NCBI RefSeq assembly: GCF_037042905.1
Contig: NC_087254.1
Location: 32,612,001-32,676,000, forward strand
Direction of reading: 5' to 3'
DNA: 64,000 bases
From: Lytechinus pictus
Lineage: Eukaryota
Below, piece by piece: positions 6,943-56,717 of the stretch; position 1 is the first letter of the stretch; each line of letters starts with the position of its first letter. The notes below the pieces were generated by a model. That model saw only the letters and a program-made list of their open reading frames with translations. It did no database searches and was not told the DNA's origin. The translations under genes were made by a program, and so were the position numbers.

Positions 6943-9317
6943 ATGGTGGAGTGTACAGCACCCAAATTATCTGACTTTGGTCTGTCGACGTCATCCTATG
7001 ATGTTTTTACAAGAACTCAGGTAAGACAATACACTTCTTTTTTGGACAATTGGTCTAAATTCCCATGCTGTCAACATGATGAACTCATTTGGCCATTTAG
7101 CATATGTTATTCCTGATCTCTCTGAACAAGATTATTCTTAACAAAGAAAACTTTGTAATTTCTGGCAATTTTTCCAATTTGATGTATATCATTATAATGT
7201 TTGGAATGGCGATCTCCCCTCTGAAATTCAGCTTCAACCCCAATGTTTTTACTCACTCATGAGATCTATGATATCAACGACAAAGATCAAAGATCTCAAT
7301 ATTACAATGTTTACATCATAATTTATCTGACCTGATATTGATTATGGTCAATTTAATGCAAAATCTTTTCACGGGACGACCTGTGCAGTCTAATTAACAA
7401 TTATTCTTAAAACAAATTTCACCAATAAGGCTGAATTCAAGTTGGAATTCCTGACAAACTGGAATTCGACGATATTGGCTTAGACCACACGACAAACAAA
7501 TCACGTTCTTTATCTTATGATCATGTGGGATGATAACCAAAAGGGTAAGGGAGGGCCTTCATGCCCCTATCAGTGACAACATATTTTGTCCCAATAATCT
7601 TTACGAAGACACCTATTGTGATTGAATAAAAAGGATACAACCAATTTTGAATGTAGGCCTATATACTTTTAACATGTTTAAGAATACGCTTCAATAGTTA
7701 CCACTTTCCACAAAATTATTATTCCTAAAGCTACAATAATCTCCAATGTGGCCTATATTGTCGTTTTGTTACGGTAATAATTTCACCGAATTATTATTTT
7801 ATTCTTCGTGTCTCCAGTGCAGCTTTCCAAGAGCGGTGTTGCTGATATACCGATTCTTGATGACCGGATACTTCCTCGGTTACCAAATCTACTTGTGGGC
7901 TAACGTGTTTACCATCCATGATTACATCTTCATGACTGATTGGACCTATACGGTCTTCACTTTCTATTCCTTGATTGCTCTGATCAACCTTATAACGGAC
8001 ATGAGTCTTCAGAGATGCTATGACACGTCACATGCTTCCAACGGTGAGCCGGATTTCGTATACTCATTGTCATGATTGTATCCGGAAATCAGTGTAATCT
8101 GAAAATAATATTGCTAAAACAATGCAGTATTCTTATAAACAAAACTGGTTCCAAACTTAGCAAAGATATTTCAAATCAGTAAACCACCTAGTAGTATGAA
8201 TGGAGTAGTACGGAGCGTTGATGTGGCCCTGTGTATTAGTCTCCGGACTTTGAAACAGAGGGTCGTGGCCTTCAAATCCCAGCCATGGCGTAGTTTCCTT
8301 CAGCAAGAAATTTATCCACATTGTGCTGCACTCAACCCAGGTGAGGTGAATGGGTACCTGGCAGGAATTTATTCATTGAAATGCCGAGCGCTGGAAGGGC
8401 TGCTTGAGCTACAGCCGGGGTAATAATATCCAAGTCCTTTGGAAGCGATAGAGACGTAATTCATAATCTGTTATGCGCTATACAAGAACTGACTATTATT
8501 ATTATTTATTATTATTAATTCAGTTACTCGATCAATCGTTCAATTATTGTTGCTCAGTCAGTCGTGGAGATTTGGGGATGCCGTTGCCGAGTGGTAGAAC
8601 ACACCTGACTCTAGACTCATGAAAGTCCGAGGATCGATCCCTGGCCACGGCACAGTCCTGTGCCCTTGATCAAGGATTTTAATCCACAGGGCTCTTAGTA
8701 GACGATTGGTACCAATTATGTTTAGGAAAATCTTACTGTCATCCTTGATTTTCTTTGTTTAGTTCTTTCAAATAGCATTTGTCTTCCATACCTCCATATA
8801 TTTTCACGTGCATCAAAGTATTATCTGTATCTTTATTCTTATTTCAGTACTAAAAGGGCGACATATGATCCAGTGGCTTTTTTACAACGTCATCGTCACA
8901 TGGACATGCCTTGTTCTCGTTGTCTTCTGGGGCGCCCTCTACGATCCTCGATATCCAAACTGGATGTTTGACATTTCCTGTCACGCCTTACCTGGTGTGT
9001 TCAGTGTCCTTGAGCTTGCCTTCACTGCGACACCCTGCCGACTCGCCCACATCATCTACCCGATGATCTACGGGTTGCTCTATCTCACATTCACCCTTGT
9101 CTACTGGGGGACTGGCCATCCACCGATATACTCGATCCTCGACTACAGTGGCAACCCAGGATTGGCTACGGGATCGATCCTTGGTATGGTAGGGTTCATG
9201 CTGCTGTTTCATCCGTTGGTTTGGGGGCTCACCAAGCTCAGGGGTAGCGTTGCAGGAAGATTGAACTGTTCTCAAGACTTACACGGCGATCGACATGAGC
9301 TCATCGATAGAATGTGA
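6943..9317 (+). CDS. Protein rolling stone-like / FAR-17a/AIG1-family multi-pass membrane protein (~257 aa, 3 coding exons)
   Basis: Exons 6943-7020, 7818-8043 and 8848-9317, all GT-AG with compatible phases (774 nt). Motifs LSDFGL, LLIYRF, YIFMTDW, IQWLFYN, VFWGALY, CHAL, HIIYPMIYGLLYLTFT and PIYSILDY are typical of rolling stone-like proteins. Confidence 0.85.
8209..8517 (+). mobile_element. tRNA-derived SINE with (TAT)n tail, in intron 2 of the rolling stone-like gene
   Basis: Degenerate A/B-box head, central CCTTCAGCAAGAAATTTATCCACATTG...CAACCCAGGTGAGGTGAATGGGTACC, and a 3' GCGCTATACAAGA...TATTATTATT tail. The same tail appears at 63235-63340. Confidence 0.75.
8574..8700 (+). mobile_element. 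5' part of a tRNA-derived SINE
   Basis: GGGGATGCCGTTGCCGAGTGGTAG...GGATCGATCCCTGGCCACGGCAC...TGTGCCCTTGATCAAGG. Same family as 50868-51030. Confidence 0.65.
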
Positions 9318-26818: not shown

Positions 26819-40912
<14,094 letters not shown>

Positions 40913-41019: not shown

Positions 41020-44000
41020 GTAAGATAAAAAGGAGAAGTGCGATTAAGGAGATTTATAATAAAAATGAGGAAACGGTGCGAGATTGCAAAGGTATTATAA
41101 AAATCATTCGGGAGTTTTATAAAAATTTATATGCATGTAAAAATCTTGAAACTAATGATGATATTGAAAACATGTTTTTTAGTGATTTACCCAAATTGAG
41201 TAAAGAAAATAGAGAGTTTTGTGAATATCCGATAACACATGAAGAATGTTTTCAGGCTTTAAAGGAAATGAAATGGAATAAATCGCCTGGCAATGATGGT
41301 TTTACCGCAGAGTTTTACTTTAAATTTTGGCCACTTTTAGGGAAAATCATAGTTGAAGCTTTCAATGAGAGTTTTGAAGTTAAAATGTTGTCAAATTCGC
41401 AGAGACAGGGGGTAATTACTCTAATTGAAAAAGAAGGCAAAAATCCTTTGCACATGAAAAACTATAGGCCGATAACTCTTTTGAATGTAGATTATAAAAT
41501 TTTGTCAAAAGTGTTAGCGACAAGGGTGAAAGAGGTCTTGGGAGATATTATTCATTGTGATCAAGTGGGTTATGTCAAAGATCGTAATATTGGGGAAGCA
41601 GTTCGGTTAATTGATGATCTGTTTTTTCAGTCTTTGTATCAACCCTTAGGTTTTTTAATTGCAGTGGATTTTGAAAAGGCATTCGATTGTATCTCTCATA
41701 AATTTTTATTCAAAACTTTAGAACATTTCGGGTTTGGGAAAAATCTGTGTTCTTGGGTCAAAACTCTTTATTATAATGTTAGTAGTTGTGTGTTGAACGG
41801 GGGGCACTCTACGGGATATTTTGAAGTTAATAGAGGAGTAAGGCAGGGGGATCCACTCTCTCCATATTTATTTATCATAGCGATTGAATTATTAGCTCAT
41901 TATATTAGGAGAGATGTTAATATTAAAGGGATAGGATTTGGGAAACGGGAAATAAAACAAGTTCTGTATGCAAACGACATTACATTGTTTTTAAAAGATA
42001 TGAACTCGATCCATAGAGTAAAGAAAATATTCTCAGATTTTGAAAATTTAAGTGGATTGAAGATTAATATGGATAAAACAAACTTTTTATGGTTGGGAGA
42101 AGAAAGAGATAGACCTGGTTTACCACTTCTTGGACATTGGTTACAACATATTAAAATATTAGGGGTATGTTTCGCACGGGATTGTAAAGTCAAAGATGAC
42201 TTGAACTATAAAGAAATCTTGAGTAAAATTAAAAGACTTATTGGTTGGTGGAAGCAGAGAGATCTTACGATGTATGGTAAAATAAAACTTTTGAAAATGT
42301 ATGCATTTTCAAAATTAAATTATGTTTCTTCCCTGATGACAGTCCCAAAAGACGTTTTTAAGGAAATAAAAAGAATTTCTTTTAACTTTATTTGGGGAGG
42401 AAGAGATAGAATAAAACGCAAGGTTCTATATCAAGACTATTCTGTTGGAGGACTGAGAGCTCCAAATTTTGAGGTCTTTGTTAAGACCCAACGAATAATG
42501 TGGATTAAACGTTTGCTGGATGGAGGGAAAAGTTCGGGTTGGAAAGCAACCTTCGAATATTTTTTTAGCTCTTTAGGTGGTCGAATCATATTTCTGTGTG
42601 ATTATGATACGAGTAGAATGAATTTAAAAGGTATACCATTATTTTACATAGATATGCTTAAGGCATGGCACGAATTGGATAAGTGTAGACATTTTGGAGG
42701 GAAAAGTAATCCCATTATTTTTTATAACAAGCGTCTATGCCTTAATAATAAGACCTTTTTTTATATTGAATTATTTCAGAAAGGTATAGTTAAGGTCTCG
42801 GATATAATAGTTGGAGGTAAATTAAGACCAGTTTCATACTGGTATAATCTGAAAACTTGCTCAAAATTCAAAAGATATTTTCAGTAATAACAGAAGAGTG
42901 GATACAAAATGATTTTATGGAAATGGATACAGACAACTTTGAAATTCAATTGATGATATGTGGGCATGTTCAGAAACTATGTGATATAAAATCTAGACGA
43001 ATATATGACCACTTCATTGAAAATTTTCAAATTGATTATGTATTTCATGTTACAGATGGGCAATCCGAATATGATTTGGGAATGGGAGAACTGAAAGAAG
43101 TATTTTTGAGACTGAAATGTGCAATGCTATGCAATAAACACAGAGAATTTCAATACAAACAATTACAAGGGGCTGTGTACACAAAAAGGGAACTTTTTAA
43201 ATTCGGTTTTGAGACAGATAATTTATGTTCCTTTTGTAAAAAAGAAGTTGAGTCTTACCAACATTTATTTTTTTATTGTCCTGAAGTTAAGCGATTATGG
43301 GAAGAGATGAGTAAAATATTTCAACTGAATGAACTTGGCAGTGACGTTTGGAAAACAATTTTCATGGGGATATCTGGAAATACTACAAGAGTAGCTTTAA
43401 TAAACTGTATTATATTCTTAATTAAGTATATCATTTTTAGTTCAAGAAAACAGGGAATATTGCCAACCGTACAGAAAGTGACACATTTGGTTGAAGAGTA
43501 TAGAGATACGGAATATCAAATAGCGTTTAAAAAGGGGAAGCTGGGGGTGCACTTAAGGAAATGGGAACAAATCAATGCATACCTTTCTTAATACTATGGA
43601 TGTATTGGTTGCTTCATTTTGTTTCTGTTTTGTTTATTTGTTCAAATACAGATAATTGTACCAGAGCAGGATGCATTGTGTGTGGGTGTACGTGTGTAGA
43701 TGGATGTGTGAGTTTTGTGACGGGGAAGAGGGGGGGGGGGGGGAGCTGTGAGTAGTGGTGGTTTGAAGTGAGCTTGTGTGAGTGTCTGGGGAGAGAGATG
43801 AGGGGGGAGGGGGTATGGGGGTAAGGTGAGTGTGTAGGGACGTTTTAGGATAACCTTCCTCTAATTAACCTTTAAAATAATATTTTATCCTTTTTTTTTT
43901 ATTTTTCGTACAATTAATATGTGCAAAAGAGATTATTTCTATTCTATTCAGGGAAAAAGTCATTTTTTACAAAGTACGTTTTTTTTTTTTTGTCGATTGA

Positions 44001-44256: not shown

Positions 44257-45909
44257 ATTGATTGATTGATTTTATTTGGCAAGTCACCATAACATATATA
44301 CAGTAGCATTACAACAACAGGCTTGCACAGGATGACCCACGAAAGCTCGAAAGCTTATTTCCAGTGGGGTCCTCGACATACAGAATTAAGATAATAAAGT
44401 GGTAAATTATACTATTTACATATTAAAAAAATGAAGAAAAAAAAATCAGAATTTACTATTACCAATAAATAAGATATATAGATAATATATACAAGAAAAT
44501 AAAGAAAAAGAAGAAAAGAAGGAGAAGAAGGAGGATGAATAGAAAAAGAAAGGGAGGAGGAGGAGAAGGAGACGGAAGAAAAGGATGAGGAAGACAAGGA
44601 GAAGAACAACAGCAAAAACGGCGACAACAATAACAACACGAAGAGGAGAATAGAAGATAAAAGAAATAGAAAGAATACAAGAAAGGACATATCGAAGCTT
44701 CAATCAAACTATGTAAAATAAATAATAATACCTGGTAGAGAAGAGAAAAGAACGTGGTCAGTGTTCAGGCTAAATCAACCGTATAACATATCATTTGCAT
44801 CTTCTCTTTGACTCTCAAGTGAAAGATATTCTTTCAATTTCCTCTTAAAATGCAAAAAGTTTCCTATTTCCTTTATATCATTGGGAAGGGAATTCCAATG
44901 TTTGATAGCATTGTAATAAAAGGAGTTACCAATACTACCTACCCTTTCTGGTAAGCAAAAGTTGAAATGGCTGTTTCTTGTATTATAGTTATGTAATTCG
45001 GTAACTAGATTAAAGTTTGATCCAATGTAATGATTCGATCTATTGTGATAGATTTTATGCACGTGGTGCAAAATAAGCTGTTTTGAACTTTTGTTGACTT
45101 CAAGAAAACCTGCTCCAGAGAGTTCGGTGTAGCCAACATGGGTTCTGGGACCAGAACAGTTAATGAATCTAACTATTTTATTCTGTTTAATTTTCAACTT
45201 CTTTTTATCGAGTTCGCTTATGCCACTAAACCAAGCAATGTTAGCATAGTCAAATAAACTCCGAATAAGAGCAAAACAGAGAATACGCCTTGCTTTTTGA
45301 TCCATACAAATTTGATACCTGTACAGAAATTTCAAACGGGCATTCGCCTTTTTCACAATTGAATACTAAAGATGAAAATGAAAGGGAGCTAGTCAACTTA
45401 ATGCCTAAATACTTTACAGATTCTTTCCTCTGAATTATCTTATTATTGTATGATACTTCAAATTCAAATGAAGTTTTATAATTACTTTTAGAACAAAACA
45501 GAATGCTCTCGGTTTTGCCTAAGTGTAACGATAATCTATTATCAGTCATCCAATCGACACAACAGCTGTTCGCTAAGTTTTTCCTCAACAAATTTTGGGT
45601 TGGAATTTGAACAAAGTAGTACGCTATCATCTGCATACAATAATAATTTACAGTCAGCTTTTATACAAATAGACATGTCATTGATATAAGTTGAAAATAG
45701 AATTGGGCCTAAAATACTTCCCTGTGGAACTCCACACGTTATAGGCATAATTTTGGAACGAATATCGCGAATAGCCACTACTTGATGTCGATTCGACAAG
45801 TAGGATTTGAACCATGGTACAGTAGCCTGGTTAAAACCCATTATTTGTATTTTTTTTTCAATAAGATGCCATGATTAACTGTATCAAATGCTTTTTGAAG
45901 ATCTAGGAG
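44257..45909 (-). mobile_element. L2/CR1-group LINE, 3' part (RT remnant, pyrimidine-rich 3' UTR, (AATC)n tail)
   Basis: DLQKAFDTV, GVPQGSILGPILF, LLYADD, KYLG, FDYA and WNSLP motifs across frameshifted ORFs 45542-45841, 45250-45636 and 44775-45356. The tail is AATAAAATCAATCAATCAATC. Confidence 0.88.
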
Positions 45910-46056
45910 AGTAGTTATGGGAGAGACCTCATACCTAATTGACCTTTGACCTTTGACCGCATGACCTTTGACCCCAACTTCCGGTCACTGTTGACCCCGT
46001 GACCCCACCTTCCGGTCAATCATGACCTTTGACCTTTGGGTACGCGGTAAACAGGA

Positions 46057-46300
46057 AATTGGATAATGGAGCGCGGGAAGCGATTTTAATTGGATAATGG
46101 AGCGCGGGACGCGATTTTAATTGGATAATGGAGCGCGGGACGCGATTTTAATTGGATAATGAAGCGCGGGGACGCCATCTTAATTGGATAATGAAGCGCG
46201 GGACGCGATTTTAATTGGATAATGACTCCGCGTGGGGACGCGATTTTAATTGGATAATGACTCCGCGTGGGGACGCCATCTTAATTGGATATGAGTCCAC
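46057..46300. repeat. Subterminal ~31-34-bp tandem repeat (about 8 units), mirrored at 50222-50456
   Basis: Unit ATTGGATAATG(G/A)AGCGCGGGACGCGATTTTA and variants. Confidence 0.9.
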
Positions 46301-46365
46301 GTAGGGACTCGATCTACAGGAAATTTAATTAACCTCCGCGTGGGGTGATCTCCCGCGCCCTCGCC

Positions 46366-46371
46366 TATAAA
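46366..46371 (+). promoter_or_regulatory. Candidate inward-facing TATA box of the element (mirror at 50142-50147 on -)
   Basis: CCTATAAA downstream of a GC-rich tract and of repeats each containing ATTGG (inverted CCAAT). Confidence 0.4.
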
Positions 46372-47057
46372 TGATGGGAGTAAACCGAGAACATGAACTT
46401 GGGATATCCTATTCAAGGTGAAAGCCGGCTCTCTCTGTCTCTTATTACAACAATTATTGGTAATCCAACATGTGATTATAATCCTGATAACAGTGGCATC
46501 TCAAACTCTACTCATTCCAGACTTTCCCCCATCAAAACTCTCTGACTTTTCCATACTGTTTTGTACATACCTCCATACTTTTCATTTTAACTCACATGAC
46601 CTGCACGGCTCTCTGACCCGCAAAAGTATACTATATTGAAACCCGTAGACGACTCCTTTCAATCAACTTCATTCATCCGCAGTACAGATGGTGATAACAT
46701 GAAACACTATACAGTCAAGGATGATTCTTTATTATTACTATCATTTATTCTATTCCATTTCAATGTAGATAGGTTCAATTAGTGTATAAACAGCAGATTT
46801 TGATACAAAGGTAAAAATAATGTAAGATATGTTCTCAAATTACGTTGTCACAACAAAATAATTAACTGTTCATTGTTAATATTAAAGTGAAGTTCTCGTT
46901 TTTTTTCTTTTCCTTCGCTTAACTTATTGGATTGTAACACATGTCTATGGATGGCATTCAGAAAATATGAACACAATGAAGTTCAAACTGTCATTTATGC
47001 CCGCATTTATGTTGACGGCGTTTTCTTGGATTATTCGACAAGCTGATGTTTGTGCCT

Positions 47058-47708
47058 TTAGTTGTAGGTTCCATCTTCACCCTCCGTTTCTTCTCCACCA
47101 TCATCATTATCGTCATCGTCACCTTGATACTGGAATAAACCATCGAATTGTGAACCATGCCTGGCTAACACTCTCTGTACGGCTTTCCGGAATTCCATGC
47201 CATTCTCTAATCTTTCCGTGAGATCGGACACGATTTCATGATTGATGTCAGCGTCTTCGAGGTACACGTTCTGCTGCAAGAACTGAGAGTACAGATCGAA
47301 AAAGATGCGTTTGACTGCCCACATTAGTTTCACGTGAGCCTTTGCTTTAGCGTCTTCTTCTTCCATTCCTTCTGAGATGTATTTCTGATATTTTTCGTCT
47401 CTCAAGTCCTTGGTGGCCGTCATGGCTTGCTCTAACCATCCTCGATAAGCGAGGTTGTCTTCAGTTTCTTCCATGTTTGCTGTCATTGACGATTCGTGTC
47501 CATCGCTTTCTGATACGCTCGTTTCGGAATCACCGTTGGATTCTTCAACTCTTTGCATTTGAGAGGATGGGTCGGATTCTTCATCTTCACTCGTTTCTTC
47601 TCCAGTATCATGCTCAATTTGTTCATGCCTCTGCATGTTATATTTCCTACTAAAAGTTTTATCGCATCGTGAACAAGCGTGACGGTTGGACATATCCAAT
47701 ATATTCAT
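47058..47708 (-). CDS. C2H2 zinc-finger + acidic + helical-domain protein, left copy (216 aa from first ATG)
   Basis: Intact intronless ORF with N-terminal C-x2-C-x12-H-x4-H (CSRCDKTFSRKYNMQRHEQIEH), an E/S/D-rich linker, a helical region and an acidic tail. Translation is identical to the right copy. Confidence 0.75.
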   Translation of the reverse strand: MNILDMSNRHACSRCDKTFSRKYNMQRHEQIEHDTGEETSEDEESDPSSQMQRVEESNGDSETSVSESDGHESSMTANMEETEDNLAYRGWLEQAMTATKDLRDEKYQKYISEGMEEEDAKAKAHVKLMWAVKRIFFDLYSQFLQQNVYLEDADINHEIVSDLTERLENGMEFRKAVQRVLARHGSQFDGLFQYQGDDDDNDDGGEETEGEDGTYN

Positions 47709-47800
47709 GCTGACTCGATGATTATTTGTTGGGAAATGAAGAAAATTAACGTTCAAACTTGTAATTATACGTAATCATGAAACGCGCGCGAAGGTACTTT

Positions 47801-48215
47801 GATTCTTACGGATTTTTACGCATTCTTACGGATTCTTACTCATTCTTACGGATTCTTACGGATGTTTACTCATTCTTACTCATTCTTACTCATTCTTACG
47901 GATTTTTTACGGATTCTTACGGATGTTTACGGATTCTTACGCATTCTTACGAATTCTTACTCATTCTTACGGATTCTTACGGATGTTTACTCATTCTTAC
48001 TCATTCTTACTCATTCTTACGGATTCTTACTCATTCTTACTCATTCTTACTCATTCTTACTCATTCTTACGGATTCTTACTCATTCTTACGGATTCTTAC
48101 TCATTCTTACGGATTCTTACTCATTCTTACGGATTCTTACGGATTTTTTACGGATTCTTACGGATGTTTACGGATTCTTACGGATTCTTACGGATGTTTA
48201 CGGATCCTTACGGAT
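47801..48215. repeat. 10-bp tandem array (TTACGGATTC / TTACTCATTC / TTACGGATGT), left
   Basis: About 41 units with 10-bp period. Confidence 0.95.
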
Positions 48216-48290
48216 CCACGTTGGAATGACCCATGCATGGGTCATTCTAGCGTGGATGAACATATTTTCCTTGAGATTATAGGAAAGCAT
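48214..48290. other. Central spacer: 44-bp loopless palindrome plus a short second hairpin
   Basis: ATCCACGTTGGAATGACCCATG|CATGGGTCATTCTAGCGTGGAT (48214-48257; 20/22 pairs, both mismatches G-T). TTTCCT-9 nt-AGGAAA at 48266-48286. Confidence 0.85.
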
Positions 48291-48296
48291 TGATTA

Positions 48297-48711
48297 ATCC
48301 GTAAACATCCGTAAGAATCCGTAAGAATCCGTAAACATCCGTAAGAATCCGTAAACATCCGTAAACATCCGTAAGAATCCGTAAACATCCGTAAGAATCC
48401 GTAAAAAATCCGTAAGAATCCGTAAGAATGAGTAAGAATCCGTAAGAATGAGTAAGAATCCGTAAGAATGAGTAAGAATCCGTAAGAATGAGTAAGAATG
48501 AGTAAGAATGAGTAAACATCCGTAAGAATCCGTAAGAATGAGTAAGAATTCGTAAGAATGCGTAAGAATCCGTAAACATCCGTAAGAATCCGTAAAAAAT
48601 CCGTAAGAATGAGTAAGAATGAGTAAGAATGAGTAAGAATGAGTAAACATCCGTAAGAATCCGTAAGAATGAGTAAGAATCCGTAAGAATGCGTAAAAAT
48701 CCGTAAGAATC
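48297..48711. repeat. 10-bp tandem array, right (inverted copy)
   Basis: GAATCCGTAA / GAATGAGTAA / ACATCCGTAA units. Unit order differs internally from the left array. Confidence 0.95.
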
Positions 48712-48803
48712 AAAGTACCTTCGCGCGCGTTTCATGATTACGTATAATTACAAGTTTGAACGTTAATTTTCTTCATTTCCCAACAAATAATCATCGAGTC
48801 AGC

Positions 48804-49454
48804 ATGAATATATTGGATATGTCCAACCGTCACGCTTGTTCACGATGCGATAAAACTTTTAGTAGGAAATATAACATGCAGAGGCATGAACAAATTGAGC
48901 ATGATACTGGAGAAGAAACGAGTGAAGATGAAGAATCCGACCCATCCTCTCAAATGCAAAGAGTTGAAGAATCCAACGGTGATTCCGAAACGAGCGTATC
49001 AGAAAGCGATGGACACGAATCGTCAATGACAGCAAACATGGAAGAAACTGAAGACAACCTCGCTTATCGAGGATGGTTAGAGCAAGCCATGACGGCCACC
49101 AAGGACTTGAGAGACGAAAAATATCAGAAATACATCTCAGAAGGAATGGAAGAAGAAGACGCTAAAGCAAAGGCTCACGTGAAACTAATGTGGGCAGTCA
49201 AACGCATCTTTTTCGATCTGTACTCTCAGTTCTTGCAGCAGAACGTGTACCTCGAAGACGCTGACATCAATCATGAAATCGTGTCCGATCTCACGGAAAG
49301 ATTAGAGAATGGCATGGAATTCCGGAAAGCCGTACAGAGAGTGTTAGCCAGGCATGGTTCACAATTCGATGGTTTATTCCAGTATCAAGGTGACGATGAC
49401 GATAATGATGATGGTGGAGAAGAAACGGAGGGTGAAGATGGAACCTACAACTAA
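48804..49454 (+). CDS. C2H2 zinc-finger + acidic + helical-domain protein, right copy (216 aa from first ATG)
   Basis: Same translation as the left copy. TATA-like GTATAAT at ~48742 and AATAAA signals at ~49764-49785. Confidence 0.75.
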   Translation: MNILDMSNRHACSRCDKTFSRKYNMQRHEQIEHDTGEETSEDEESDPSSQMQRVEESNGDSETSVSESDGHESSMTANMEETEDNLAYRGWLEQAMTATKDLRDEKYQKYISEGMEEEDAKAKAHVKLMWAVKRIFFDLYSQFLQQNVYLEDADINHEIVSDLTERLENGMEFRKAVQRVLARHGSQFDGLFQYQGDDDDNDDGGEETEGEDGTYN

Positions 49455-50610
49455 AGGCACAAACATCAGCTTGTCGAATAATCCAAGAAAACGCCGTCAA
49501 CATAAATGCGGGCATAAATGACAGTTTGAACTTCATTGTGTTCATATTTTCTGAATGCCATCCATAGACATGTGTTACAATCCAATAAGTTAAGCGAAGG
49601 AAAAGAAAAAAAAACGAGAACTTCACTTTAATATTAACAATGAACAGTTAATTATTTTGTTGTGACAACGTAATTTGAGAACATATCTTACATTATTTTT
49701 ACCTTTGTATCAAAATCTGCTGTTTATACACTAATTGAACCTATCTACATTGAAATGGAATAGAATAAATGATAGTAATAATAAAGAATCATCCTTGACT
49801 GTATAGTGTTTCATGTTATCACCATCTGTACTGCGGATGAATGAAGTTGATTGAAAGGAGTCGTCTACGGGTTTCAATATAGTATACTTTTGCGGGTCAG
49901 AGAGCCGTGCAGGTCATGTGAGTTAAAATGAAAAGTATGGAGGTATGTACAAAACAGTATGGAAAAGTCAGAGAGTTTTGATGGGGGAAAGTCTGGAATG
50001 AGTAGAGTTTGAGATGCCACTGTTATCAGGATTATAATCACATGTTGGATTACCAATAATTGTTGTAATAAGAGACAGAGAGAGCCGGCTTTCACCTTGA
50101 ATAGGATATCCCAAGTTCATGTTCTCGGTTTACTCCCATCATTTATAGGCGAGGGCGCGGGAGATCACCCCACGCGGAGGTTAATTAAATTTCCTGTAGA
50201 TCGAGTCCCTACGTGGACTCATATCCAATTAAGATGGCGTCCCCACGCGGAGTCATTATCCAATTAAAATCGCGTCCCCACGCGGAGTCATTATCCAATT
50301 AAAATCGCGTCCCGCGCTTCATTATCCAATTAAGATGGCGTCCCCGCGCTTCATTATCCAATTAAAATCGCGTCCCGCGCTCCATTATCCAATTAAAATC
50401 GCGTCCCGCGCTCCATTATCCAATTAAAATCGCTTCCCGCGCTCCATTATCCAATTTCCTGTTTACCGCGTACCCAAAGGTCAAAGGTCATGATTGACCG
50501 GAAGGTGGGGTCACGGGGTCAACAGTGACCGGAAGTTGGGGTCAAAGGTCATGCGGTCAAAGGTCAAAGGTCAAAGGTCAATTAGGTATGAGGTCTCTCC
50601 CATAACTACT

Positions 50611-50867
50611 TAGGAGTATCATCCCAACGAATTGTCCCTTAAAAATATTAGTTCTCAGATAATTAGTCAAGTGAATAAGGCATGTCTTAGTCGAATAGTC
50701 ATGTCGAAAACCAGACTGATATTCGTAAATCATTTCATTTTCTTTAAAATATTTTTCGATATGAACACATACCGCCTTTTCTAGAATTTTGGATACTATG
50801 CTTAAAACACTGATAGGTCTATAATTTTCAACAGCAGTTTTATCTTTCTTCTTATATGAATAGGAGT
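50611..50867 (-). mobile_element. L2/CR1-group LINE, 5' continuation of the RT remnant split by the Polinton-like element
   Basis: Minus strand TPIH..KDKTAVENYRPISVLS...YQSGFR..STKTCL...GMILL joins DLQKAFD across the TSD. Confidence 0.85.
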
Positions 50868-51030
50868 CCGGGGTTCTTATGAATAGGAGTTCGGGGTTCG
50901 ATCCCCGGCCGCGGCACCTATGCCCGTGAGCAAGGCATTTAATCTACATTGCTCTTTTATCCTGCTTTCAAATAAATGGAAATGCTATGTGCATTATTGG
51001 TAACTAGGTGTGCACTTGTTTAAAAAAAAT
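50868..51030 (+). mobile_element. tRNA-derived SINE body; head probably at 44246-44256
   Basis: GGGGTTCGATCCCCGGCCGCGGCACC (B box and 3' acceptor strand) followed by TGCCCGTGAGCAAGGCATTT. The complementary 5' strand GGTGCCGTG lies immediately outside the LINE tail. Confidence 0.65.
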
Positions 51031-51879: not shown

Positions 51880-53384
51880 CAGTGGCGTAACAGGCGGGGG
51901 GGGGCAATCTGCCCCCTGGCGGATTTCACCGGGAAAATAAAAAAAAAACTGGAAAAAGAAAAAAAGGAGGGAGAAAGAAAGGGGAAGGAAAGTGAAAAAG
52001 GAAAGGAGGAAAAGGAAAGGGAAAGGGAAAAGGGAAAAGAAAACGAAGAAAAAACCTTTTTTTTAATGGAAAAGGAAGGAAAGCGGGAAAATGTACGAAA
52101 GAAGAACATTTGAGAAAGAAAAAATCATTCCGAAATAGGCCTATGTAATGCACTATTACGGTGGGAAATAAATTAAAAGATGACAAAATGGCAATCAATA
52201 GCGGGAAACGAAGTTAGAATGTAATTAGTCAAAAGCTAAATTGGAAAACAAAGAAAAGGGAAGGGAAAAAAATAATACGACCGGGCTGCCGATGATTTAC
52301 AACATTGTGCTACAAGCATGCTAAATTTTACGCAAATAAGCTACCGGGGCAAGGGGGCTCTTCATTTATAACCTTCAAATGGCTCTATAACGCCCCCGTT
52401 CAATCACTGGCATACAGGCTGGTGGGGGGTCTTGGTTCCACACCCAAGAGGAAATAAAAGAAATTATAGGAGACAACGTATAATGAAAATGAATGGAAAC
52501 AATGAAATGTGTTATTTGCTGAATATAATGGAAAAATCTATCACATAATTAGAATTTAATTTCAATAGGCATTTTTTTTAGGCACGCTGGTGACTTTTTA
52601 CAAATTTTTCCCACATTGCTATGTTTTTCTCCCCTCAAAATATTTGGTTCATTACGCAACTGGGTTGAATAAATGTTTTGTGCAAAAGCTATATTCTGTA
52701 TATGCCCGCGATTTGATTAATATAGCGGCAATCTGCGAGGTTTAAATGGCTTTGATATCAAGAAGTTCCGGGGGCTCCGCCCCGGTCCCCAACAGCACTG
52801 CGTATGGAAGGGTTAGGCCATGGCCCCAAAAAGTTCTACAAACAAGAACAAAAAACAAGGAGGAAAGAAAAAGCAAAGGAAAAGTGTAGGATATGATTTT
52901 ATTTATTGAACATAATGTCAAAAAAATAGCTCAAAGTTAGATTCTCTGAAAAGGTGGTTTTTTTTCTCGCTCGCTTCGCTCGCTCGGGACTTATATAAAA
53001 CAGCTTTTTAGCACATGTGCTATACTGCGCCCCTCGTTTTTTTTTTTTTTACTCTTCACGCTACTGCCGCAAAAAATCCTGTTCACAGTGGCGTATAGAC
53101 CAAAAAAAAGGGAATCTAAAGAGAGAAGAGTGAAATATATTATTCTCTGGATATCATGTCAAAATATATCACAAAATTTGATTTTTTTTTATTAAAAAGG
53201 TCAGAATTTTTGCTCGCTTGCTTCGCTCGCTCGCAACATTTTTAAAAAGATAAATTCTGCCCGATACGCTATATTTGGCCTTCTCAAAAAAGTCGCCTCA
53301 TTACACCATTACGCCTGTTCATGACCGGGATATTTTTGGTTCTTGCCCCCCCCCCCCTGGCCCCCGACCCCTGTTACGCCGCTG
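51880..53384. mobile_element. Non-autonomous hAT-like element
   Basis: TIRs CAGTGGCGTAACAGG / CCTGTTACGCCGCTG. Exact 8-bp TSD GAGTCATT at 51872-51879 and 53385-53392. Confidence 0.85.
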
Positions 53385-54411: not shown

Positions 54412-56717
54412 TCAGTCTGAGTATTCTGTCGCTTTTGATCGCGACTTGATCCTAACCACCCATAACGACAGAACCCATACGATGGCGACATTCCCGACAA
54501 GCACGGCGAGAAAAACACCAAAGGTTGACATGAATGTAGGCATGCCGTGCTGCTCAATGAAATCTGGGCGCTCCTCCAACTCCGCAAGAAAGGCGAGGTA
54601 ATGGCAGTAGCTGGCGAGACTACTCCCGATGTGGAAGAACTGATGACTGTGGCCAATGAAGTCGAACTTCCCAGGCGCTATGACCTCTGGGAATCTCGTG
54701 GAATAGAGTAATGAGATCCCGAATATGAAATAAAATTGCCACATTTGGAAGTAAAGAGCATCGCTGTCGCACCCCGTTGACTCGCAATAGATGAGGCGAT
54801 AGACTAAAGGAATTCTGAAGAAAAAAAAAGCATTTTAAAAATGATATTTTTTACAAATCAATCTAATAATCTCACCGCGCCAAGTTTGTAAGGGAAGAAA
54901 TTGCTTCAAAGTTGCGAGCGACCGAAGCGAGTAAGCACAAATTTTAAAATCCGACACAATTAAAATCGAATTTGGGATAAATATTGACCTAATATCCAAA
55001 GAAATTAAGATAGCATATTTCACCCTTTTCTTTCCTTTTCTTTTTCTTTTTTTTTCATCGGGAAACTTTTTTGGGGGAGGGGCATGGCTCCCAAGCGCCC
55101 CCCATCTGTACCCTAGTGGTTCGCCAATGATATCCTCGTGAATATTTCTTACTTGCACCAGATGTAAGGTATAGCAAACGCTGGCAGACGACCGCCATCT
55201 CGGAGGGGAGCCCAGGTGGAAAACCGGCTACAACATGCCAAGTAAGTACTTCCGAAGGCCGTTACCATAGCAACAGGGATGTATACATGGTAAAGAGGCG
55301 TGTCTATTAACTCCGGTGGAAATGAGTAGGTATAGCAAGCTGTGAACAGAAATAGAATGAAAATATTATGTCAGGGCTAAATATGAAGATATATGCCTAC
55401 TTTCATGAACTTATCACCTGCTTATTAAAAAAGAATTGGGAACCCCATATGAATTTACAAAATATTCGTAAAACTGCATGCATTCTTCTCATGTGCAACG
55501 GCTAATTTTCCACTTTGGTCTAAACATTTTGTTCCGTTTACACGCCAATTCAATAAAAAAATACTTGTATTCACTTGCAACGCATTCTCATTATAAACAC
55601 ATGATAACAAGTAAATCGTATTTATTGAGATATATGACAACAATGAAGGAGACATAAATCCCGAAAATCAAAGAAATTGTGATAGATACGATTGATCATA
55701 ATTTATAAAAATGATCATAGAAAAGTGAGCCTAATATCTTTTAATCGTTGAAATTCATCGGATGTTGTATGGTAGGCCAAATCATTGACCCTATCATTGA
55801 CTGTTTACCGAGGGTATAAGAATTAATTTCTTACCTAGACAAGTACCAAAACTGTACATACTAATCCCAAAATAGTCTATGAAGAAAAATGTGTATCTAG
55901 CACACTGGGACATGCTATTGAACATATGGGCAACGGAGCTGGCCATCGTGTAACAAAAGGTACCGAATAGGAAAACTATAACAGGCCACATTAAGGGATC
56001 GTGGGCAACACCGTGATCGTTGACGGCGACCATCCATGTAAGGCGAAGGAAGATGATGGCGGGGATGAAGTGAGTCCAGAAGTTGATTGTTTCGTTGGTG
56101 CGTTGGAGCGCACTAGCCAGGCAGGATGATGCGCTACTTTGACAGGACCGGTATCCCGAGATGATGAACGGCTCCCGAAAATCAGATGGAACCTGATGAA
56201 GAAGGGATATACAAAAGAGAAAAGGGTGAGGGAAGGAATGGCCATGAAGACACAGAAAGAGAGAGAGAGAGAGAGAGTATGAAGGGGGAGGGGCGAGAGG
56301 GGAATACAAATTTTTTCCACTTTGCGCAAATGTTGTGACACTCTATACAAACATTATCAATGCTCACTCAGGCATGAACAAGTATTGTCGTTTTGTATCT
56401 GATACATCTCATCTCATCTTGTCGATAGAAGTGATATTACAGTATCTGTCAACACTCACAGATCTGTCACATTTTGAAGTATCATTTAAATACATACATG
56501 TATATGTAACTTTTCTTTTGACTGTTTGATACGAACTGTTTACTCTTTAATTCATCACGAATTAATAGTTGTTGCTGGTATTAATTATTACTTCACTGAT
56601 ATCATTTACAATTTTATCTTATATGAATATTTTCATGAAAAAAAGACTTTATCTATACATTAAGTTGTTCCAGATTAAGCTTACCTGATCAAAACGAAGA
56701 AGTTTAAGCGTCCACAT
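54412..56717 (-). CDS. PAQR-family 7-TM protein, membrane progestin receptor-like (~326 aa, 4 coding exons)
   Basis: Minus-strand exons 56717-56685, 56192-55835, 55339-55153 and 54814-54412 (981 nt, GT-AG). Motifs QVP..FREPFIISGYR, NETINFWTH, SSVAHMF, DYFGI and PE...PGKFDFIGHSHQFFH. Confidence 0.9.

Follow-up and report, generated by a model that had tools for sequence, protein, structure and literature searches.

Polintons, also called Mavericks, are believed to copy themselves in the adenovirus manner, by protein priming and strand displacement, a view based on their gene content; to our knowledge, protein-primed replication of a Polinton has not been observed. Incomplete adenovirus genomes carry large inverted duplications of one end. 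Snap-back subgenomes built from one end are documented for adeno-associated virus (AAV) (PMC8235507), and the snap-back genomes of linear DNA replicons have been reviewed (PMC13506859). The 6-bp end motifs of Mavericks are most often built of AGT trinucleotides, and the elements are recognised by (AGT)2//(ACT)2 or (AG)3//(CT)3 ends together with a perfect 6-bp target-site duplication (TSD), the terminal inverted repeats (TIRs) of vertebrate Mavericks measuring 46–1447 bp (PMC8097293); for Polintons, a 6-bp TSD, a 1–3-bp terminal tandem repeat and a racket-shaped single-stranded intermediate have been summarised (PMC4196379). The general range of TIR lengths quoted from the literature is 100–1500 bp. 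Here we describe a 4701-bp element that lies in a 64,000-nucleotide stretch of the sea urchin Lytechinus pictus genome (NC_087254.1, positions 32,612,001 to 32,676,000; hereafter the window) and that bears Polinton-type ends, although 98% of it is made of two 2.3-kb inverted repeats, the arms, each containing an intact zinc-finger gene and the two meeting at a 44-bp loopless palindrome. An earlier model-made reading of the letters of the window (the sequence-only reading) had compared this centre with a hairpin telomere or a resolution site. Our preferred explanation, to which we give a probability of roughly 0.58, is that the 44-mer is the junction scar of a snap-back-like, head-to-head duplication of one Polinton end, later made asymmetric and without a dedicated function.

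The element is bounded by identical inverted 26-nt termini at positions 45910 and 50610, beyond the limits given by the repeat finder, and it starts with AGTAGT and finishes with ACTACT. It lies in the reverse-transcriptase (RT) open reading frame (ORF) of a long interspersed nuclear element (LINE), whose RT motif is split exactly at the duplicated hexamer TAGGAG; on the minus strand this hexamer encodes the LL of the interrupted motif, as seen when the two flank pieces are compared separately, unjoined. Because the TSD is perfect and the RT motif resumes across both flanks, the segment 45910–50610 is a clean insertion of one discrete mobile element. The host LINE is broken not only by this insertion but also by several other stops or frameshifts, not counted exactly. 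From the outside in, each arm consists of a 29-nt unique end, a half-site cluster, 31-bp repeats, an inward-facing TATA box, an outward-facing ORF, a TATA-like box with a conserved leader and a 10-bp array. The features are as follows.

45904–45909, no strand: left TSD copy TAGGAG, 6 bp (the same hexamer stands directly after the right end)
45910–50610, no strand: whole fold-back element, 4701 bp, filed as a non-autonomous Polinton/Maverick-type insertion (inverted termini, TSD, arm alignment)
45910–46050, plus: left terminus (29-nt unique end from AGTAGT) and cluster of TGACCT/TGACCC half-sites (mirror copy at 50470–50610)
46057–46291, plus: subterminal 31-bp tandem repeats, about 7 copies (mirror copy at 50200–50456)
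47058–47708, minus: left copy of the zinc-finger gene, intact, for a 216-residue protein, transcribed away from the centre (ORF, Pfam, structure model, ratio of nonsynonymous to synonymous substitution rates (dN/dS))
47801–48213, plus: left 10-bp array, 41 units, variants of TACGGATTCT and TACTCATTCT (unit-by-unit reading)
48214–48257, no strand: 44-bp loopless palindrome, the innermost 22 nt of each arm (pairing, fold, scan, arm alignment)
48258–48296, plus: asymmetric segment of the right arm only, holding a weak TTTCCT/AGGAAA stem-loop (arm comparison, fold)
48297–48711, minus: right 10-bp array, 41 units, differing from the left one by unit-level indels only (arm alignment)
48804–49454, plus: right copy of the zinc-finger gene, intact and identical to the left one (ORF, arm alignment)
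50611–50616, no strand: right TSD copy TAGGAG, 6 bp (perfect match to the left copy)

The left arm was aligned to the reverse complement of the right arm, and both arrays were then spelled as strings of units. Outside the centre, the arms show no substitution at all and can be matched position by position all the way to the central 22-mer, starting at the terminus; what sets them apart is a 7-nt unit, a single base in a T-run and, within the arrays, four unit-level indels. Beside the centre, a stretch of 41 nt in the right arm corresponds to one extra 10-nt array unit in the left arm, after which both arms enter the same 22-mer (the asymmetric segment measures 39 nt from palindrome to array, or 41 nt if counted from a shared GGAT). 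The arms being collinear up to this point, the 44-mer is their continuation, i.e. their inner end. The sequence-only reading had noted that the axis of the palindrome is offset from that of the arms by about 39 bp, which is correct, and had seen in this offset an obstacle to a single simple fold-back; the obstacle disappears, since one replacement indel in one arm (41 nt versus 10 nt) accounts for the offset.

The history of the arms can be read by comparison with a second copy (referred to as L001), the nearest relative identified, which occurs at another locus in an independent assembly of L. pictus and has the same fold-back architecture, with AGTAGT ends and the TSD AAAGCA. The arms of the window copy and of L001 have diverged by about 4.6%, whereas within each copy the arms are identical, and the same 63-nt centre is found in both. 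As they share this junction, the two copies descend from one fold-back ancestor. If the arms had drifted independently since then, they should differ by at least about 4.6% within a copy; they are identical, and the alignments thus indicate that the arms evolve in concert, each being corrected against the other. The two halves of the palindrome, for their part, differ at 2 of 22 positions. This difference fits correction tracts that end at the 41/10-nt heterology, and it suggests that both halves are old rather than the result of a recent local duplication.

The palindrome itself is as the sequence-only reading had described it: 48214–48257 pairs at 20 of 22 positions around the axis 48235/48236, with the core CCCATG|CATGGG, and a scan of the window for loopless palindromes (half-length 22, at most two mismatches) returned it as the sole match, against none in 20 shuffles. 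The two mismatches are transitions; the description of both as G-T holds for the plus strand but not for the minus strand, where they are A-C. Neither the 44-mer nor its 22-mer half occurs a second time in the 64-kb window. As for the idea that the 44-mer might be a common miniature inverted-repeat transposable element (micro-MITE), in the window and the compared loci neither it nor its half was seen anywhere but at the centre; an exact-pattern scan of the JGI metagenomes for the centre gave no match. Folded as single-stranded DNA, positions 48150–48360 adopt the announced Y shape, a three-way structure in which the long arm stem is joined by a 20-bp hairpin, closed by a loop of 4 nt, and by a small stem-loop. 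Of the two ears foreseen, the first is stable, the 101-nt centre folded alone reaching –22.5 kcal/mol (z = –6.7). The second (TTTCCT at 48266–48271 with AGGAAA at 48281–48286) is weak and marginal, at –2.9 kcal/mol, a value equalled by 7 of 200 shuffles, and is not above chance.

Centres were compared with those of one close relative, L001, itself rearranged, and one distant relative, L003, an ENA contig whose protein is 57% identical. In L001, the 63 nt to the right of the axis are kept, with the same conservation as the rest of the element, and the left array runs straight to the axis; the palindrome is absent from this copy, only one 22-nt half being present, the centre folds no better than shuffled sequences, and the second stem carries one uncompensated substitution. 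L003 is also a fold-back, with arms of at least 144 nt at 97% identity that are cut by the contig end, but its centre of about 100–122 nt is unrelated to that of the window and its centroid fold is unstructured. A hairpin telomere or a resolution site should be conserved, and neither relative has an equivalent; such a reading of the centre, be it as a protelomerase site, a resolution site or a Y/T-shaped terminus, is therefore not supported. Two observations on shorter palindromes may be added here: loopless palindromes of the 12–14-bp half-length class occur elsewhere in the window only at 28062/28063 and 30662–30668, and L003 has a perfect 14-bp palindrome with a CATG core at 173–186, off-centre, which may be a coincidence.

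How does the element compare with described systems? With Polintons and Mavericks it shares the 6-bp TSD, the AGT reiterated at either end and long TIRs that contain subterminal tandem repeats, to which may be added its gene, a homologue of which neighbours a protein-primed PolB gene. Its end motif is exactly (AGT)2//(ACT)2, and the TSD is 6 bp long in three independent insertions (TAGGAG in the window, AAAGCA in L001 and GTAGTA in a third element, L002). It differs from them in its length, 4.7 kb instead of 13–25 kb, in the absence of PolB, integrase, capsid, protease and ATPase genes, none of which was found in the element, the zinc-finger gene being its only conserved ORF, and in its 2.3-kb inverted repeats, which exceed the quoted maxima of 1.4–1.5 kb and each contain an intact gene. 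No Polinton gene or other part of the element was found elsewhere in the 64-kb window. We therefore file the element, on its ends, its TSD and the homologue near PolB, as a probable Polinton/Maverick derivative, and, as PolB and integrase are missing, as a non-autonomous one only. A literature search returned no description of such a fold-back Polinton derivative.

Very long TIRs, internal tandem repeats and a short middle domain are also found in the foldback transposons (Drosophila FB, Galileo, Tetris and the sea-urchin TU elements), which are assigned to the MULE or P superfamilies. Foldback elements have been reported from sea urchin, and their TSDs measure 7–10 bp (PMC4079207). Lengths of this kind characterise the MULE or P transposases that mobilise these elements. 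The element of the window differs from them by its 6-bp TSD, its Maverick ends and the intact conserved gene in each arm. While its architecture recalls foldback transposons, by its probable origin the element is closest to snap-back defective genomes: one end is duplicated head-to-head, the same replication and packaging signals stand at both ends, and the outcome is a highly symmetric palindrome whose turn-around is short or absent. Here the arms are collinear from terminus to axis, and both L002 and the context of P0029 (see below) show one gene only, situated at one end. Snap-back genomes, however, are transient in virus stocks, whereas the present family is heritable and integrated, shows about 5% divergence between two copies, and keeps a gene that looks expressed and bears the mark of purifying selection.

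Hairpin telomeres, protelomerase sites and poxvirus concatemer junctions resemble the centre in that they too are loopless palindromes of comparable length around which a head-to-head duplex is symmetrical, but the palindrome of the window is imperfect, is not conserved in a relative and has an axis that differs from that of the arms. As for the Y- or T-shaped hairpins of parvoviruses and AAV, the common point is the three-way junction formed when the window centre is folded single-stranded; unlike them, the present structure is internal, its second arm is at chance level, its stem is 2.3 kb of coding DNA, and the element has no Rep gene, Rep-binding repeat or nicking site. The repeats beside the centre are the 10-bp arrays, which are also found upstream of the zinc-finger gene in relatives that are not fold-backs.

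The relatives point to the fold-back state being derived. L002, with 75% nucleotide identity in the ORF, is an 8.7-kb element that is not a fold-back: its ends are AGAGAA//TTCTCT, its TIRs span about 620 bp and consist of tandem repeats, and it has one zinc-finger gene only, placed immediately internal to one of the TIRs. On the contigs of the homologues P0005, P0016, P0019 and P0029, the upstream listing shows no second copy of the zinc-finger gene in divergent orientation. It is because of these short TIRs with a single gene, and of the missing divergent partners, that the fold-back looks derived. P0029, a 36% identical homologue, lies about 4 kb from a protein-primed PolB gene (PF03175) and points away from it, according to a gene listing that covers 10 kb on each side; on the other homologue contigs, Polinton genes are not listed beside the zinc-finger gene. 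Judging from these comparisons, the parental TIR probably corresponds to the outer 0.4–0.6 kb of the arm.

On this basis, the following scenario may be proposed. The parent would have had ordinary TIRs of about 0.4–0.6 kb and, just inside one of them, an array-preceded zinc-finger gene transcribed toward the end. One parental end, reaching from the terminus across gene and array to a point some 63 nt beyond, would have been duplicated head-to-head, the likely cause being a strand switch during strand-displacement synthesis (snap-back) that turned at the short self-complementary CATGCATG. The resulting palindrome would have been perfect, its two ends identical and both competent for integration. 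At a later stage, one arm would have swapped the 41 nt beside the central 22-mer for a single 10-nt array unit, an exchange that would have shifted the apparent axis and isolated both 22-mers from the rest of the arms. The family would have spread, presumably mobilised in trans by enzymes from autonomous Polintons; the long arms would have been held identical by arm-to-arm correction and the isolated 22-mers would have drifted by two transitions, one 22-mer being lost in the L. pictus relative L001. Were it single-stranded, the element would adopt the shape of a 2.3-kb hairpin at whose tip the centre would lie, a position that is a consequence of the architecture and not evidence of a telomere or resolution function. 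Part of what the sequence-only reading proposed is thus retained: the link to Polintons agrees with the ends, the TSD, the homologue near PolB and the head-to-head duplication of one end, and the suggestion that the palindrome marks the place where the fold-back was made comes close to the scar at the turn that we favour. What is not retained is the closed hairpin end, and self-priming at a dedicated site.

Several points weigh against the snap-back scenario. That 22 nt should contain two substitutions while about 2.3 kb contain none requires the added assumption that correction does not cross the indel. An autonomous Polinton with these termini was not recovered among the relatives examined, and the link to PolB comes from a single contig (P0029) known by gene listing alone. 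Regarding the centre, L001 is a rearranged composite, and the half-palindrome that it lacks could have disappeared late, in a copy already dead; L003 is a "1x" contig that ends inside the inverted repeat; and the window centre shows none of the significant similarity to the sequences upstream of the arrays in L002 and L003 that would mark it as internal sequence of the parent. Finally, the parent could itself have had 2.3-kb TIRs. This last point is the premise of the best of the alternatives, which we nevertheless consider unlikely: gene and array would already have been part of the parental TIRs, everything between these would have been lost, for instance by a polymerase jump across the base of the racket stem, and the 44-mer would be the two inner TIR boundaries joined. 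A loopless junction is what such a jump is expected to leave. Moreover, the fold-back recurs in L003 at 57% protein identity, so long gene-bearing inverted repeats could be ancestral, and the view around P0029 reaches only 10 kb to each side, which makes a second copy at the far end possible. Against this stand the TIRs of about 620 bp and the one gene in L002, a nearer relative than L003, the several other contigs on which no divergent partner gene is listed, and the published TIR lengths, which run up to 1447 bp in vertebrate Mavericks (PMC8097293) and to 1500 bp in general.

Less probable than such a loss is a purely local event, in which an ancestral spacer of about 63 nt was asymmetric and the window lineage later copied its first 22 nt inverted alongside, independently of how the element arose. 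Template switching is a known source of short inverted duplications, and L001 displays exactly the expected prior state, namely array, 63-nt unique segment and array. On the other hand, the halves differ by two transitions and the 2.3-kb arms by none, which argues that the duplication is not recent and would have to be older than much of the family history; and L001 is rearranged and has other deletions, so that a simple loss of 25 nt there explains the difference equally well. A functional centre, serving as hairpin telomere or turn-around, for resolution or for self-priming in a half-length duplex with one protein-primed and one closed end, appears improbable. The 44-mer does fold strongly and would sit at the tip of the hairpin that any single strand forms, a hairpin intermediate could help to explain the concerted arms, and the rearrangement junctions of L001 are mirror images, so that something symmetrises these elements. 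However, in addition to the lack of conservation in L001 and L003, the halves carry mismatches left uncorrected, the second ear is at chance level and is weakened by the single uncompensated substitution of L001, integration took place by two ordinary ends with a TSD, and the arrays differ between the arms, so this copy is not a freshly unfolded hairpin. Nor does the gene content favour a functional centre: the element encodes the zinc-finger protein only, no protelomerase, Rep or resolvase gene being found in it, and no gene for a telomere resolvase or recombinase was found in the element or the 64-kb window, the helper element being unread. We know of no cognate telomere-resolving enzyme gene in the Polinton superfamily. 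The Polinton core gene set (PMC8097293) includes no protelomerase, Rep or resolvase. It is very improbable, lastly, that the palindrome was made by a chimeric fold-back read or by the collapse of an inverted repeat: long repeats of this kind do pose difficulties in assembly, and the L003 contig breaks inside one, but the arms differ by several indels and the 41-nt segment, unlike a mirrored read, both flanks continue one LINE ORF with a clean TSD, and an independent L. pictus assembly shows the same architecture at another locus.

The arm gene is intact, without breaks, in both window copies. Its 216-residue product comprises one C2H2 finger, a disordered acidic linker and a helical C-terminal domain (AlphaFold, confident prediction). 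Pfam and PDB sequence searches matched the fingers only, and a Foldseek search of the AlphaFold model against PDB and BFVD gave no match at E ≤ 0.001, so that the helical domain found no relative by sequence or by fold. The protein family has more than 60 members (P0002–P0065 plus the window), every named one being from Lytechinus pictus; protein-guided scans of IMG/VR and the JGI metagenomes gave no match. Each member combines one C2H2 finger and an acidic linker with a helical domain, predicted with confidence, for which no relative is detectable. Between the window gene and its L002 homologue dN/dS is 0.15, a value which indicates that the gene family is under purifying selection. Note that the NCBI gene models of L. 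pictus fuse pieces of the family to host genes or label them "dentin matrix acidic phosphoprotein 1-like".

In all four loci (window, L001, L002 and L003), the region ahead of the gene carries tandemly arrayed units containing ACGG, a TATA box and a conserved leader, so that gene and array belong together. The unit changes from one subfamily to the next: TACGGATTCT/TACTCATTCT in the window, TACGGATCTACGGATTCG in L002 (9786–9928) and CTACGGCGTTGCGGCGTTCCA in L003 (390–488). Every unit nevertheless keeps the ACGG core and a period of about 10 bp, i.e. one helical turn, the motif of L002 being reversed relative to the gene. Since the units change between subfamilies yet preserve core and period, the arrays are suggested to be putative binding sites that co-evolve with the finger protein.

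The outer part of the arm deserves a few comments. The half-site cluster, which reads as GGTCAAA 7-mers on the other arm, is one 7-nt unit longer in the mirror copy at 50470–50610. The half-sites lie at 45939–46050 and 50470–50581, and several of them occur as GGTCAAAGGTCA, which by its letters resembles a direct-repeat-1 nuclear-receptor element; this motif is also present inside the 157-bp repeats at the end of the L003 contig (L003:4388–4746). Just inside the 31-bp repeats, a TATAAAT box at 46364–46372 (mirror near 50150) faces inward, to the 3' end of the zinc-finger gene. Convergent transcripts could thus be produced in each arm, and a long self-complementary RNA from both arms together.

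L001 is more complex than a simple copy. The segment L001:6638–12779 is a composite whose outer copy has the normal 6-bp TSD AAAGCA. Its inner fold-back copy lacks the first five terminal bases on each side, carries a 4-nt filler and replaces the central part of a second copy in opposite orientation; the two junctions are exact mirror images, and the inner copy has no direct TSD. The four arm units are nearly identical (0–1 mismatch per 300 bp), and the left-inner and right-outer units share the same internal deletion. The gene is intact in one unit, truncated in two (one of which is also internally deleted) and mostly lost in the fourth, by two deletions, one of them the same event as in another unit. 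A nested canonical insertion was ruled out, the inner copy being devoid of the five terminal bases on both sides and its flanks being inverted rather than direct; a simple inversion by recombination between units, worked out by hand, fails to give the observed arrangement. None of the mechanisms tried accounts for it.

In the rest of the window, which holds 399 N, the element has ordinary neighbours. Upstream of it, on the plus strand, 41076–43591 is the remnant of a non-LTR (long terminal repeat) retrotransposon with RVT_1 and zf-RVT ORFs; the degraded LINE that hosts the insertion occupies 44775–45841 and 50617–51000 on the minus strand; and purine-rich low-complexity tracts at 44546–44606 and 51962–52053 flank the two non-LTR remnants. 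Host-like exons are found at 8808–9317 (plus strand, match to the "rolling stone" family) and 55794–56309 (minus strand, match to a HlyIII/PAQR-type membrane protein), from which it follows that the element lies in ordinary gene-bearing sea-urchin DNA.

The central palindrome can be explained without a special function, and the interest of the locus lies in the element rather than in the 44-mer. As a tentative and rather doubtful idea, the family might be a heritable Polinton parasite of the defective-interfering type, born by snap-back during protein-primed synthesis and cycling through a self-complementary 2.3-kb hairpin that keeps its arms identical. If so, the hairpin intermediate, tipped by the 44-mer, would reveal any arm-to-arm difference as mismatches; the symmetrising step would have left another trace in the mirror-image junctions of L001; a parasite of this type could not do without the zinc-finger gene and its 10-bp array; and the elements would offer a first sequence-level footprint of animal Polinton replication, proposed but never observed. 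Independently of this idea, the element defines a minimal retained set (terminus, subterminal repeats, zinc-finger gene plus array), which is searchable in other genomes. Two inverted copies of one Polinton end are an expected by-product of protein-primed, strand-displacement replication, and their presence here may serve as indirect sequence evidence for that mode.

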